From: Paragordius varius
Taxonomy: Eukaryota; Animalia; Nematomorpha
Assembly: GCA_964247055.1 (NCBI GenBank)
Contig: OZ176056.1
Location: 806,001 to 870,000 of the forward strand
DNA length: 64,000 nucleotides
Direction of reading: 5' to 3'
The notes beneath the pieces are model-generated. The model had not been told where the DNA came from and did not search any database. It worked only from the letters and a program-made list of their open reading frames with translations. Shown one piece after another: positions 8,641-33,276 of the stretch (positions within the stretch are counted from its first letter, which is position 1; every line of letters starts with the position of its first letter). Made by a program: the position numbers and the translations under genes.

Positions 8641-10297
8641 GGCAATTTTTCTAAATCTTGAAAAATATACCGATAACAGCAGTAACTTCGATTCAAATTT
8701 GGGGTATCTATTGATTTCAGATATTTTAAGTTTATACTAAAAAACTTAAGGCGGTTACAATTTATATATACTTCTCTATATAAATAAGCCAAAATATTTA
8801 ATATGATTTAGTTTTGAAAAATAAGTTCCGTATCAAACTAGTTGCCATTTTTATTTTACAACATTTTTGCCGTCCTTATTAGATTTTAAGTTAAAAATAA
8901 TTTTTTATTCAACACATGTAACATTGATAGAAATAGAAAAAGTGGTTTATTTTATTTTTAAAGCACACTTGACTAATTTTTTGGGTTTTATACCTTAAAC
9001 AATGTATTGTGAAGAATTTGTAAATGATTTATTTTTATATTTTGGTTTATTAATATTTATAAGTGCAAACTCTTGTCATGATTTCAATTAATTCCATATT
9101 TTTTGTTGTATTCAATTTTAAACAGGCCTGGGGTTTCCAAAGACCCCAAAAATCTAAGAATTGAAATGAATGTGTTCAAATGTAAGCAATAAGAAACAGA
9201 GTAAATTGCCAATACAGTGAACATATTTTTACAATTAGAATTGAATAATATATAAGAGAAACATTATATTTTAAAAACGTATGGTGTATCTGTAAAATTT
9301 TAATTTTTTGCGCTAAGTATGTAGAAAATGCATTTTCGTTAATTTTTTAGTCCCTTATATGCTTGGAAACATACCCAAATCCTGCCAAATAATAAAACAT
9401 TCGATATTTTGAATTCCATTTTTAGTAATTAACTATTCAGGATTAAGAAAATATTTTGAATTACAATATAAAGAATTTACTTTTTAACCTATTTATTTTA
9501 GATTACTATCTATAGATGTTATGCTTAATCGTTTTTGGCATCTAGAATTCTATAGTTTATAAGTGCCCTTGGTTAACTGATTTAAAACAGCGCCCGAAAT
9601 GAAGCTAATAGCTCCAATTACCAATTTTTGTAATACATTAAAATTTTTGGCCCTTTAATCGATAAAGAAATCTAATAGGATTAAAAATATTCACATCTCT
9701 AAGAGGGGTTTTTAGTGAACAAATGACCTAAGATAAAGTTAAAAATTGAGAAGCGGTATAAATGTTCCTAAATATTGGAATGAAGGCATATTTATTTATA
9801 CATTTAACTATTCTTGTTAGAGGATATATATGACAGCGTCTAAATCAATCCGTTAGATTGATTAATATATATTTATATATATATATATATATATATTATT
9901 AAAATTCATTAAATTTAAAATATTTGCATGATAAAACTATTAAATTAAAATTAAATTTTGATGGAGATAAAATACAGTAAAAATTAAAATTATACAGAAC
10001 AGTAGTATAAACACAAATATTTTTTTTAAGACAACCAACTTTTTTTATAATTACATAAATTTAAAATTGTAAAATTGCAATTGATTTCAATAAATATTTA
10101 TCTTTAACATATTTAGCAATTTAAAATAACAAGTTGTTAAATAAGAACGGCGGCCTTTTGGAAAAAAAACCATTTGTATTTATATTTTTACATTTTGGTC
10201 TGTATAATAATAATGTTTACTGTATGTAACAAAGTCACATTGATAATTTTTATGGGGCATTTTTTTAAACAAAATTATTTAAAAAAAACAAAAATTA

Positions 10298-10531
10298 TTA
10301 GATAATTAATAGCTCTCCCCCATCCCCGTGATGATGGTGTCTATGACGATGGTGATGGTGATGATGTTCACGTCTTTTCTCACGAATTAACTTTAAGGCA
10401 GATGAGCTTAGATCTACAGATTCAGGATATTCCAGGTACTTATCTAAGCTTTCTACATTTTGAGCTGACACTCCATTGTTCCTGGCCGGGGCTAATATGG
10501 CGAAGAGCAAGACACTTGCAAGAGAAACCAG
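10298..10531 (-). CDS. His-rich secreted prepropeptide, paralog B (main coding exon; first coding exon not resolved)
   Basis: Acceptor tttttag, then LVSLASVLLFAILAPARNNGVSAQNVESLDKYLEYPESVDLSSSALKLIREKR-REHHHHHHRHRHHHHGDGGELLII*. Close paralog of the exon at 12053-12301. Confidence 0.8.
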   Translation of the reverse strand: MVSLASVLLFAILAPARNNGVSAQNVESLDKYLEYPESVDLSSSALKLIREKRREHHHHHHRHRHHHHGDGGELLII

Positions 10532-11293
10532 CTAAAAATATGCATGGCAAAGTTAAAAATGTTTATAAAAATTTTGTAAAACAGTACCGGATCTTTTATG
10601 CTATAGAGATATAATAAAAAAGTGGATGTATTTACATGATCGTTACGAAGTATGATTTTTCCTTTTTATTAGTTGCATTTTTGAAAATTTTGAAAAATTC
10701 AGTGTCTAATTTGACCAATAAAATAAAACTCATACATAGCGACTGACACATGTGAATTGACTACCTTTTAGCCATTAGAAATACAGATAAGGCCTATAAA
10801 TAGTGCTTGGGTTTATCTTATACTTTCCAAGTTTTATAATTTGAGCATATTCCTACAAGTTCCTAGAATCTATACAGGCTCTGAATATAATGTAGGCATC
10901 TCAATTGGGTCTGATAAGCTTATATCCACTATAATATTCAATATTATAATCTCTTGAAAAGCTAATCTTTAAAAAATAAAATATGCTTATCTATCGTCAA
11001 ATGATATGACTTATCATTTATAAATAAATTTATACCTTTAGGCAAAACCATTTTTTATTTCATTTGGGTAAAAAATAAGTTGATTTTTATACTAATTCAA
11101 AAATGTATAGAAACCCAAAAGGAATATATTTATCTATAAGAATTGGCATACCAAGAGAGTTTTCATAGATTTACCCAACATTGTTATTTCTATGAATATT
11201 ACGGAATATAATTGATTGAAGATGATGTAAAAAAACAAATTTATGCCGTTTTTAAATTTGATCAAACTTTTTATTATATTTTAATTTAAGCGA

Positions 11294-11311
11294 GTCATTT
11301 GCTAAGTCATT
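11294..11311 (-). promoter_or_regulatory. Candidate ARE/CNC-sMaf site upstream of peptide gene B
   Basis: gtcatttgctaagtcatt reads ATGACTTAGCA on the - strand and fits RTGACnnnGCA. An identical 18-mer lies upstream of paralog A. Confidence 0.45.
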
Positions 11312-12052
11312 CTCATCATAATTGATCATCTTAAATAATTATTAACGTTTAAATAAGCGTTATTTTCCAATGTCAGGGTGGCCGTTAACCTACGGCTAAT
11401 TAACTTATATTCGTATACGGGATTATATATAATATATATTAGAATAATAAAGTAAATATTGTTTATAAGATTATAAGTATCCATTTTTTTAATATAATTT
11501 TAAACGACAATAGTTACAGAAAGTTTTACTATATTTGATATTTTTATTTTGAATGCATATTTATATAGATTGAGGGATCCATTTAAATTTAGTTGCCTAG
11601 TAGTATGGTTTTAATTGCATATTTTTGTTAACGTTTTTGCTTTGATGCCAGTATTTTACCTATTGATAAAAAGTTAATTTTTAATAAATGTCTCAAATTT
11701 ACAAATAAACTATTTACGCTGGGAAAAATCTTTAAATCATTCCTAACCTGTTTCAGTACAAAAATTGTCGCTCTATAACACCCAACAAAACACCGTTTAG
11801 TTTAACATTGGAAAAAACACTAAAAATCTTTGAAATATACGATATAGGAATGAAGGCAATTTATTTTATCCCATATATATATTAAGTGATATATAATTTA
11901 AAGAGCATATGGATCAATATAAGTTTTTATCAATATTTTTAAAATTTAGATGAATCCTTAAATTAAAATGAGATTAGTTTAAATGATTTTGGAAATGTGT
12001 GTAAGTTTCTTGCAATTTAGCGGTATTAAATCATTTATATTGTTGAAAAGAT

Positions 12053-12499
12053 TTATAAAATTAAAAGTTCATCTCCTCCCCCATGATGATGATGGCGATG
12101 ATGATGCCTATTGTGGTGATGATGGTGATGATGATAACGTCTTTTCTCTCGAATTAAATTAGCTGCAGAGCCTCTTTGATCCAGAGATTCAGGATACTCC
12201 AAGGAATTATCTAAGTTTGCCACGTTTTGAGCTGACACTCCATTGTTCCCGGGACCCGGGGCTAGAATGGCAAAAAGTAAGGCACTTGCAAGTGAAACCA
12301 ACTATTTAGAAACACACATATATATATACAGTAAAAGCATAAAATGAATGGTGAAAACTAAAAATGTTTATATAAAAATTGCGATAGGAAACGCAGACGT
12401 GGTGTATGAGTATTTTTACAATGCGATTAATTATCGTCAGATAATATATGCAGTAAAGGGCAATACAATTAGCCTATAGTTATTTTTTTCGCTTTTCAT
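12053..12499 (-). CDS. His-rich secreted prepropeptide, paralog A
   Basis: Exon 12499-12467 (MKSEKNNYRLI, donor gtattg), phase-0 intron, exon 12301-12053 (LVSLASALLFAILAPGPGNNGVSAQ...LEYPES...IREKR-RYHHHHHHHNRHHHRHHHHGGGDELLIL*). Confidence 0.85.
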
Positions 12500-13276
12500 T
12501 GCTATTAGACAAGAGTATTTTTTATGCATATGCTATCTGACAGTATTTACGAAAAAGCTAAAAATTTATTTTATCTTATACTTTACATATGGTTAAAAAT
12601 AAAAAGAAAAATGTTTATAACAAAAGGTTATTTAATGTAATCAAAGGCGCGCAGATTAGGAAATATATTTTTGAAATTGTTTATTCTTAGTTTCTAACCA
12701 ATAAAAAACTTTGCTCAAAGCTGTCATACCGAATAGTAAATTAAAAATGAAATATTTTATATTTTAAGATTATTTATATCGAATAGTGTTACGATTGAGA
12801 AATTATTAGCCTTGGGCAGCAAAAGCCAAAATAATATTTTTCAATCAGCATTATTAGTTAAAAAAATTAAGATTTAAAATTATAGTTGCATAAAATCGAA
12901 GTTTTATAAAAAAATATAAAATATAAATTTAAATTTTAAAATTAACCATATTCATAAATTCTTAATATTATCCTGATAGCTCATAATGACCAAGTCGGAT
13001 AAATATGAACCAGATTTAAAATGTCTGTATTTACAGTCTATATAAAAAAATTAATTAAAGGTAAAAAAAAATTTATCCTAACAAATAGAGAGTAGAGTAT
13101 TAAAATAGATTGTAATGTTACAAATTTGGTATACCAAGATATTTCTGACAGATTTACCCAACATTTTCGGTGTGCGGAATATAATTAGAAATTTGTAAAA
13201 ATAATTGTGAATAAAAACAAATTTTTTAAGGCTTTTATATTCCAATCAGCTTTTATTTCAAAATCAATTTGTCTTT

Positions 13277-13294
13277 GTCATTTGCTAAGTCATT
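13277..13294 (-). promoter_or_regulatory. Candidate ARE/CNC-sMaf site upstream of peptide gene A
   Basis: Same 18-mer gtcatttgctaagtcatt as 11294-11311, conserved while the flanks have diverged. Confidence 0.45.
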
Positions 13295-14110: not shown

Positions 14111-14442
14111 TACCATTTACAATTCAATTTCACCCTTGAACAATTCAAATTCACCCTCGAACAATTCAAATTCACCCTCAAATAAAATATATGTTTTTTA
14201 AGATTAAATATTACCTATATTTTATATATTTTTAAAAAATAAAAATTATGTTTTAAATTAAAATAATACTGAAAAAATAATAAACCATACCATAAACATA
14301 TATTTGATATTAATAATTAGTTATATTAGTTCGAAAAAACATAATTTATTTTTAGGGTGAATTTGAATTGTTCAAAGGTGAATTTGAATTGTTCGAAGGT
14401 GAATTTGAATTGTTCAAGGGTGAATTTGAACTGTAAATGGTA
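14111..14442. mobile_element. MITE family 1 (TA-flanked, TIR taccatttacaattcaaattcacc with ~20-bp internal subrepeats), representative copy
   Basis: Left end taccatttacaattc, right end gaactgtaaatggta, with 3-4 copies of gaacaattcaaattcaccct on each arm. Other copies at ~2985-3165, ~4190-4490, 27448-27747, 29985-30216, ~52445-52712, ~57355-57620 and ~58768-59011. Confidence 0.9.
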
Positions 14443-16517: not shown

Positions 16518-18274
16518 TTATCCATGATGGCGACCTCCATGATGCCGACCGCCATGATGTCGTCTGTGTCTTCTCCTCCTTCGTCTGCGTCCACATCTTC
16601 TTCTCCTTCTTCTGCGACGTCGTCTGCGTCCACCGTGATGGCCCCCACCATATCTGCATAGCAACGATTCAAATTAAATTTCATTTTTACAAAGGGTTTT
16701 TTTCAGCTGACAAAAAAAGATATTCAATATTCTCTATAATATAACCATGAATTAGCTGGTCAGAGCTGATTTGATCATTTGTTTAATATAAATATAACAT
16801 TGAATTTAATATATAATTAAACCCCAACATAAGCATTTAAAGACGCTTATGAATTTATACTTGGATTTAGTATTTAATATTTCAAAAAACCTTTTCTCTC
16901 GTTTTAGAGTTTCTCCAACGGCCCCTGGATATTCTAACAAGGCATCTATTTCATAATCTGCAAGGGAGCGTTTTTGTTGCACTAGTCCCGTTGAATCTTG
17001 ATCACCCAATTTTTGATCAGCTGATAAGCGGGAAAATAGATGGAGACATACGAAACCCAATAACTGCAAAAGTTTAAAAAATTATAGATTTTTAAAAAAA
17101 AAATTCTAGGTTTTTTTTCGATATCTTACTATATTAAATTCAGTGATAAGTGATTATAATTAACCATCTTTTTATATACGCGTGAGATATTTTAATATCT
17201 TTAAATTGATTTTTAAGCGTATATAAAAGGGTTTTACATTGTAATAAATTGCAAAATTTTAAGGGTGGCTACAAGGTTAATTAAATCATATATATTGTTT
17301 TAAAAAAAGTCTAGTCATGATTTGATATCGAATTTTAAACTTGTGTTTATAAGTATAATTTAACGCTCCATGAGCTTTTGCGGTAGTTTTTATCCCAGAG
17401 CGATTTGAAATTTAAATATCTCAAAAGTGTTTAAGGTATTAATCCGAATTTAAAAATATGCTTTCTTTAGCCTTTTAGGCGCATTTTACAAAATTCTTAT
17501 TAAAAAGTTAAATTGTAAAAAAATCATCATCTCAAATTTTTTCACCGCCATTTTTTTTAATTCATTTCAATTGTTAATACAATAGGCAGATAAATGTATA
17601 TTATGGTTAGAAAATGTAAAAATTATTTTTAGTAAGGTTTTAGTTTACATTTAATTAGCAAAAACTTGGTAATATTAAATTTATACGCTGTTTGTTTCAA
17701 TCAAGAGATGTCTTAAATTTAATTTCTAGAAGTCACAAAAGGGTAAAAATATTAGTTTTATTAAGTACAGGACAACTATGTTTGAAAATTAATATTACTA
17801 ATATAATTGTAAAAACAATAGTTTATTTAAGATATTGACCTCTGGAATATAAAACCCCCAACATGTCATCGCGGACAAAAAAGTGAAAAGGTCATTAAGT
17901 GTAAAAGACAAAAATACAAAAACAATCCGCAACTTAAAAAGTTAACTCTCAATTTTGCAATAAATTTAGTATGTTTAAATTTTAACTCTACATGGGGTAT
18001 GATATACAAAACGGGTTTCTCAACCATTGTAAACGGCTCTAAAAGTTTTGACTATTCTGAATAGAAAGAAGCAATTATAAATTTGGTTGTGATTAAAAAT
18101 TGACATACAACCTTTAAGTTGCGACTTTATATAGCTAAATAAACTTCCGAAAGATTGTTTAAAAATATTTATCGGATTCCGATCAACATCATTTAAAACA
18201 TTGCCAAAATAAAATTTATAAAAGCAAAAAATGAATATTACCAGTCCTATCGTCAGCACCGATTTGTATTTCAT
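16518..18274 (-). CDS. Arg/His/Gly-rich secreted prepropeptide, paralog C (113 aa)
   Basis: Exons 18274-18242 (MKYKSVLTIGL, donor gtaata), 17063-16891 (LLGFVCLHLFSRLSADQK...QQKRSLADYEIDALLEYPGAVGETLKREK, donor gttttt) and 16653-16518 (acceptor atgcag; R-YGGGHHGG-R11-CG-R7-HRRHHGGRHHGGRHHG*). Phases match; LEYP and REKR are shared with paralogs A and B. Confidence 0.85.

Positions 18275-23674: not shown

Positions 23675-33276
<9,602 letters not shown>

Follow-up and report, generated by a model that had tools for sequence, protein, structure and literature searches.

Two gene models, termed here A and B, lie in tandem on the minus strand of a 64-kb window (i.e., the whole stretch of DNA that was analysed), which is eukaryotic, has a G+C content of 20-32% across its length and contains the spliced exons of a dyskerin gene. 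The two models agree in the architecture of their second exon: the frame starts directly after an AG acceptor, encodes a hydrophobic stretch, a propiece of about 30 residues, the tetrapeptide REKR and a His-rich peptide, in that order, and terminates at TAA. Histidine accounts for 14 of the 28 residues of peptide A and for 11 of the 24 residues of peptide B, and each peptide ends in E-L-L-I-[IL]; both frames lie where a first-pass annotation of the DNA, which reported the same two His counts, had placed them on the minus strand. When a (CAY)5 pattern is searched for with one mismatch allowed, the window yields 14 matches where 0.06 are expected, and 13 of these fall inside the second exons of A and B. 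Because the His codons are a mixture of CAT and CAC (11 and 3, respectively, in A; 7 and 4 in B), the runs are not a pure triplet microsatellite. Coordinates of A and B, and of a neighbouring gene model termed here C, are given in Table 1.

Table 1. Positions of genes A, B and C and of their parts within the window
Feature	Position	Strand	Remarks
Gene A upstream block	13165..13294	-	conserved with gene B; TATAAAAG box about 70 nt before ATG
Gene A exon 1, coding part	13135..13164	-	10 codons, Met-Leu-Gly-Lys-Ser start, phase 0, GTATAC donor
Gene A intron	12302..13134	-	833 nt, AG acceptor at end
Gene A exon 2	12053..12301	-	leader hydrophobic core, propiece with L-E-Y-P-E-S, REKR, His-rich peptide, stop
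Predicted released peptide A	12056..12139	-	28 residues, 14 His (longest run 7), 3 Arg, Gly3, Asp-Glu, four terminal hydrophobics
Gene B upstream block	11182..11311	-	counterpart of A block; TTTAAAAA box about 70 nt before ATG
Gene B exon 1, coding part	11152..11181	-	10 codons, phase 0, GTATGC donor
Gene B intron	10532..11151	-	620 nt
Gene B exon 2	10298..10531	-	architecture as gene A exon 2
Predicted released peptide B	10301..10372	-	24 residues, 11 His (longest run 6), 3 Arg
Gene C	16518..18274	-	three exons: 18242-18274, 16891-17063, 16518-16653

First exons, upstream blocks and the neighbouring gene C

A 40-nt direct repeat (11143-11182 and 13126-13165) pointed to the first exons of A and B. 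Over a collinear block of 170 nt (13126-13294 in A and 11143-11311 in B; 65% identity, E = 1e-14), the two copies exhibit, when read along the minus strand, an 18-mer, a TATA-type box, an ATG with its 10 codons and a GTAT donor, and their similarity ends 9 nt past the GT of that donor. Both first exons encode Met-Leu-Gly-Lys-Ser followed by five variable residues; both are in phase 0 and run in frame onto the AG acceptors of the second exons, yielding precursors of about 90 residues (10 + 82 in A, 10 + 77 in B), the joins of which were checked by exon phase. The introns likewise have two short collinear blocks in common (at 12570-12587 and 12341-12381 in A). The 18-mer, which is identical in the two upstream blocks (13277-13294 in A, 11294-11311 in B) and lies about 115 nt before the ATG, has a core that fits the ARE/MARE-like pattern RTGACnnnGCR; this pattern has four matches in the 64 kb against an expectation of 0.9, and the two 18-mers supply half of them.

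These first exons revise the extent of the locus. The span proposed by the first-pass annotation ended at 12499, which implies a first exon of A at the ATG found there; that ATG is intronic, and the conserved first exon of A lies beyond the span (Table 1). The same annotation had noted that B would be a pseudogene if it lacked any in-frame first exon, and B possesses a conserved one. Other candidates were dropped because they are not conserved between the copies, namely, the ATGs at 12529 and 12499 with a GTATTG donor in A, and those at 10751 and 10733 with a GTCAAA donor in B. A segment of B at 11035-11065 that resembles the first exon of C (E = 0.006) was also rejected: its third codon is a stop, and the next ATG is in the wrong phase.

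The dyskerin gene (23880-26813) provides a view of splice donors in this genome. Its exons were identified by Pfam, with their ends placed where we take those of dyskerin to lie, and its donors within the window read GTATCG, GTAATT, GTTTTT, GTCACT and GTTTTA. Given so loose a consensus after the GT, the GTAT donors of A and B are ordinary for this genome. The same gene has one intron of 22 nt, its five donors vary widely enough after the GT to include GTC and GTT, and an open frame for CHMP5 (24436-25179) is nested in one of its introns on the same strand. More generally, footprinting by comparison of paralogues can recover tiny two-exon genes, including first exons of 30 nt, without RNA.

Gene C resembles A and B in layout, having a first exon of 11 codons that begins M-x-x-K-S-V, an L-E-Y-P motif and an REKR, although the similarity is weak (E = 2-7, even within the window). 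Its Arg/His/Gly cargo is encoded on a separate third exon, the second intron splitting the last Arg codon of REKR (16889-16892 / 16653-16655), whereas in A and B a single exon encodes both scaffold and cargo. This difference in exon layout hints that exon shuffling or the loss of an intron may have swapped the cargo or fused it to the scaffold.

A unit of 21 nt is tandemly repeated in two short arrays, at 14119-14179 and 14356-14434, which are reverse complements of each other and lie 180 nt apart. Because the unit recurs near 27460 (at about 27455-27480), these arrays are probably a dispersed repeat or foldback element.

Selective constraint and independent copies of the DNA

The second exons of A and B are about 80% identical as DNA and 72-75% identical as protein, most of the flanking DNA is unalignable, and the indels between them (3 nt and 12 nt) leave the frame intact in both. 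By the Nei-Gojobori method, the 77 aligned codons comprise 52.3 synonymous sites, with 25.2 differences, and 178.7 non-synonymous sites, with 23.8; that is, dS is 0.77, dN is 0.15 and omega is 0.19 (Fisher p = 4.8e-7), an estimate that derives from two sequences and no outgroup and that is not assignable to either copy by itself. This comparison, suggested as a check by the first-pass annotation, thus returned purifying selection acting on the coding sequence. When the precursor is divided into segments, each with few sites, omega is lowest for the His part (0.09) and the leader (0.11), followed by the tail (0.17) and the propiece (0.30). The annotation had also described the end of the peptide as kept, and had taken this to suggest selection on it. 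E-L-L-I is indeed identical in A and B, but the Gly/Asp portion that precedes it is rearranged and the final residue differs; the nine codons of the tail harbour 4.5 synonymous and 4.5 non-synonymous differences, and their omega is not below that of the His part, on too few sites to single out the tail.

Stop-free stretches of at least 77 codons make up 38 of the 9837 in the six frames of the window, the median being 8. Start codons, donors, acceptors, frames and stop positions are all preserved in both copies. Judged by their sequences, A and B are real coding sequences under purifying selection. A dS of this size combined with so low an omega indicates that the duplication is old and that the coding sequence was kept for most of the time since; one copy, either A or B, could have died recently. 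The duplicated unit, about 1.3 kb in length, consists of the upstream block, exon 1, the intron and exon 2. A and B are best explained as intact two-exon genes descended from an old tandem duplication of this unit; the joint reading, which adds a role in host defence (see below), is held tentatively.

Contigs from four sequencing runs (X5-X8) were aligned to positions 10050-12850. Three of the runs (X5, X6 and X7), each from another study, contain pieces at low depth that match exonic, intronic and intergenic sequence exactly, and one such piece spans the intron/exon boundary of A (12246-12396). Because these pieces include intergenic and intron-spanning sequence, the three runs are DNA, and an artefact of assembly can be rejected as the source of the locus. 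In X5 and X7, a divergent copy of 11100-11254 retains the start codon, the reading frame and the donor GT of exon 1 of B; two substitutions fall within the 30 nt of that exon (one silent, one Leu to Phe), versus six substitutions and three indels in the adjacent 52 nt of intron. Over 12142-12252 of A, a run piece exhibits two differences, one of which is silent while the other changes Gly to Ser within the propiece, Ser being the residue of B at the aligned position. The fourth run, X8, which is a putative RNA run with the same species label, has no match to 10050-12850, which is not proof of absence.

Two further features of these alignments may be recorded. Across 10962-11265 the version in X5 and X7 is about 8% different, with many small indels, while neighbouring stretches from the same run match the window exactly; the variant is a second copy located elsewhere or else a haplotype of high divergence. 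At 10161-10197 and 12455-12496, which are single-copy in the window, many high-depth contigs from three other runs align at 85-90% identity with loose ends on both sides, and these may be low-complexity matches or the ends of a dispersed repeat.

Among known proteins, a word-indexed search of 5.8 billion sequences found no relative, a language-model protein atlas gave no usable match, and an exact-protein look-up of the exon 2 products found no identical protein on record. When 1.84 billion representatives were searched exhaustively with a profile, two matches emerged, P0001 and P0002, both of them artefacts: these are long tandem-repeat proteins with scores summed over 8 and 34 weak repeats. 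Likewise rejected were Pfam matches to the ZrgA zinc uptake protein and to SelP_N (Selenoprotein P N-terminal), which cover the His run only and score 9.7-13.5 bits against cut-offs of 23.2-27.4, and a match to the Fungus-induced family, which is far below its cut-off. Since tiny spliced genes often go unannotated, A and B are to be viewed as orphans within the protein databases, not as truly absent from sister species.

Such an orphan status, together with the lack of RNA support and of a canonical AATAAA within 180 nt past either stop codon, is what would be expected if A and/or B were silent or untranslated, that is, relics of a once-active family or gene-like only through their recent duplication history; this is judged improbable, because dS and omega imply a long history under constraint, because every element of the gene models is preserved in both copies, and because annotation routinely misses small orphan genes, which makes absence from databases weak evidence.

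Predicted processing and possible functions

The leader has its basic start in exon 1 and its 12-residue hydropathy maximum (2.5-2.7) at the start of exon 2; past this hydrophobic core are candidate signal cleavage sites, namely, A-P-A in B, G-P-G in A and V-S-A in both. As sequences, the two leaders are compatible with cleavage of a signal peptide somewhere from residue 26 to residue 34, and such a signal would route the precursor into the secretory pathway. REKR, a furin/convertase site, is invariant in A, B and C and conforms to R-x-K/R-R ahead of the cargo; an enzyme of the furin or prohormone-convertase type would cleave after it, freeing a peptide of 24-28 residues. A cut exactly after REKR would give the N-termini Arg-Tyr-His (A) and Arg-Glu-His (B), both of which are X-X-His, the ATCUN type. 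From end to end, the predicted peptide would then consist of this X-X-His N-terminus, His runs of 6-7 and 4 residues split by Arg, a Gly/acidic hinge and a hydrophobic end of 4-5 residues. The computed net charges of A and B are, respectively, about +1 and 0 at pH 7.4, +12 and +8.5 at pH 5.5, and +15 and +11.5 at pH 4.5. The sequences, the gene structure, the constraint and the lack of relatives are thus observed directly, whereas secretion, cleavage, metal binding and activity of the peptides are inferred.

The most likely reading, held tentatively, is that A and B encode peptides of a host-defence type that are processed, secreted and metal-binding and that become cationic through a pH switch. 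A conserved pre-pro part joined to very different cationic cargo within a tandem cluster is typical of host-defence peptide loci. By this mechanism, a peptide that is near neutral at pH 7.4 would turn polycationic below pH 5.5, with a charge of about +12 to +15; its predicted binding of copper, nickel and zinc could starve or damage microbes; and its greasy end would help it to sit on membranes, as a polar head with a greasy foot. Because the charge is near zero at neutral pH, microbes would be killed only in an acid niche or with the help of metals. Of the three functions that the first-pass annotation had proposed, metal sequestration and pH-gated killing fit the charge switch and the predicted X-X-His, while none of the present results bears on the third, a metal-hardened secretion. 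For secreted His-rich peptides, killing at low pH and metal depletion are established (reviewed in PMC5198042); His runs bind zinc, nickel and copper in the manner of a His-tag (PMC9472272); and X-X-His is the ATCUN motif for copper and nickel, noted in albumins and histatins (PMC9472272). Against the defence reading, the propiece, with a net charge of about -1, is not acidic, unlike that of many antimicrobial-peptide precursors.

Neuropeptide precursors have the same succession of leader, propiece and R-x-K-R, and the peptides might have some other extracellular role, either as signals or as components of a secreted material (cuticle, egg string or adhesive) cross-linked by His-metal bonds. 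Signalling ligands, however, are usually kept across species, whereas the protein searches found no relative, and the difference in His run length between A and B would be unusual in a receptor ligand. As for a structural role, His-rich proteins cross-linked by zinc or copper do harden some invertebrate jaws and threads, but the known hardening proteins are long, unlike peptides of 24-28 residues. An extracellular role of either sort is considered quite unlikely, falling in likelihood between the chelator hypothesis discussed next and the silent-gene hypothesis above.

Comparison with known systems

Long uninterrupted His runs are a rarity among natural peptides, and those of a few viper venoms have received the most study. 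[quoted passage not shown] The enzymes concerned would be metalloproteases that the animal itself secretes or, if it is a parasite living in insect blood, the copper phenoloxidase or zinc proteases of the host. This hypothesis, targets included, is regarded as unlikely, though it stands ahead of the other alternatives. Each viper peptide is part of a multi-peptide venom precursor, whereas A and B are each encoded by a small gene of their own.

Viper pHpG peptides are cut from a larger precursor and consist of acidic residues, 6-12 His and then Gly10; they bind zinc and copper and inhibit both snake and human zinc proteases (PMC9472272, PMC12108757). Their length (24-30 residues) is like that of peptides A and B (28 and 24), and both A and B have at least six consecutive His, with runs of 7 and 6, respectively. 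The order of the parts is alike as well (first an acidic or aromatic residue, next a run of 6-7 His and finally Gly), and the predicted X-X-His start is the motif named ATCUN in PMC9472272. The ARE/MARE-like element that the two upstream blocks have in common would, moreover, suit control by stress or metals, which is a weak lead. What weighs against the chelator hypothesis is that the C-terminus of about 10 Gly is absent, Gly3 or G-D-G-G followed by the hydrophobic E-L-L-I-[IL] standing in its place; that A and B have no sequence relationship to the viper peptides; and that the cargo of the neighbouring gene C is Arg-rich and not chelating. A further difference from the viper peptides is that Arg interrupts the His runs of A and B.

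A more elaborate scenario would place these peptides in the blood of an insect host, into which a parasite would secrete them to strip copper or zinc from phenoloxidase or metalloproteases and so blunt melanisation and encapsulation; the ARE-like upstream element, of a stress/metal type, would tune their expression, and, together with the Arg-rich neighbour C, they would form part of a lineage-specific arsenal invisible to annotation. This is a long shot, rated no higher than the hypothesis of silent genes.

Returning to peptides of the defence type, the histatins of primate saliva are secreted, His-rich and cationic and have an X-X-His N-terminus, as is predicted for A and B, and their killing depends on pH and metals (PMC5198042). 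In contrast to A and B, their His residues, about a quarter of the total, are scattered instead of forming long runs, and the hydrophobic end is missing. Nor do A and B show homology to the histatins or statherin: no Pfam family scored above its cut-off, and two large protein searches found no relatives.

At the level of gene organization, cathelicidins, the dermaseptin-type precursors of frog skin and the arminins of Hydra all have a conserved pre-pro part and a variable cationic cargo. The locus described here is like theirs in its tandem genes, its conserved leader and propiece, its basic site and a cargo that differs greatly between A/B and C; it is unlike them in that the propiece of A and B is not acidic and in that the similarity to C is weak. 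Tenecin 3 and holotricin 3 (antifungal peptides of insects) and the shepherins of plants are secreted, dominated by His and Gly, and built of Gly-His repeats; with no long His runs and no hydrophobic end, they are closer to the end of the gene C cargo than to A or B.

Two such genes under selection in an animal lineage unrelated to vipers would represent an independent origin of the same solution (X-X-His, poly-His and flexible Gly), to which the greasy end adds a feature beyond that plan. By this comparison, A and B constitute a new and unrelated family of a known chemical kind.
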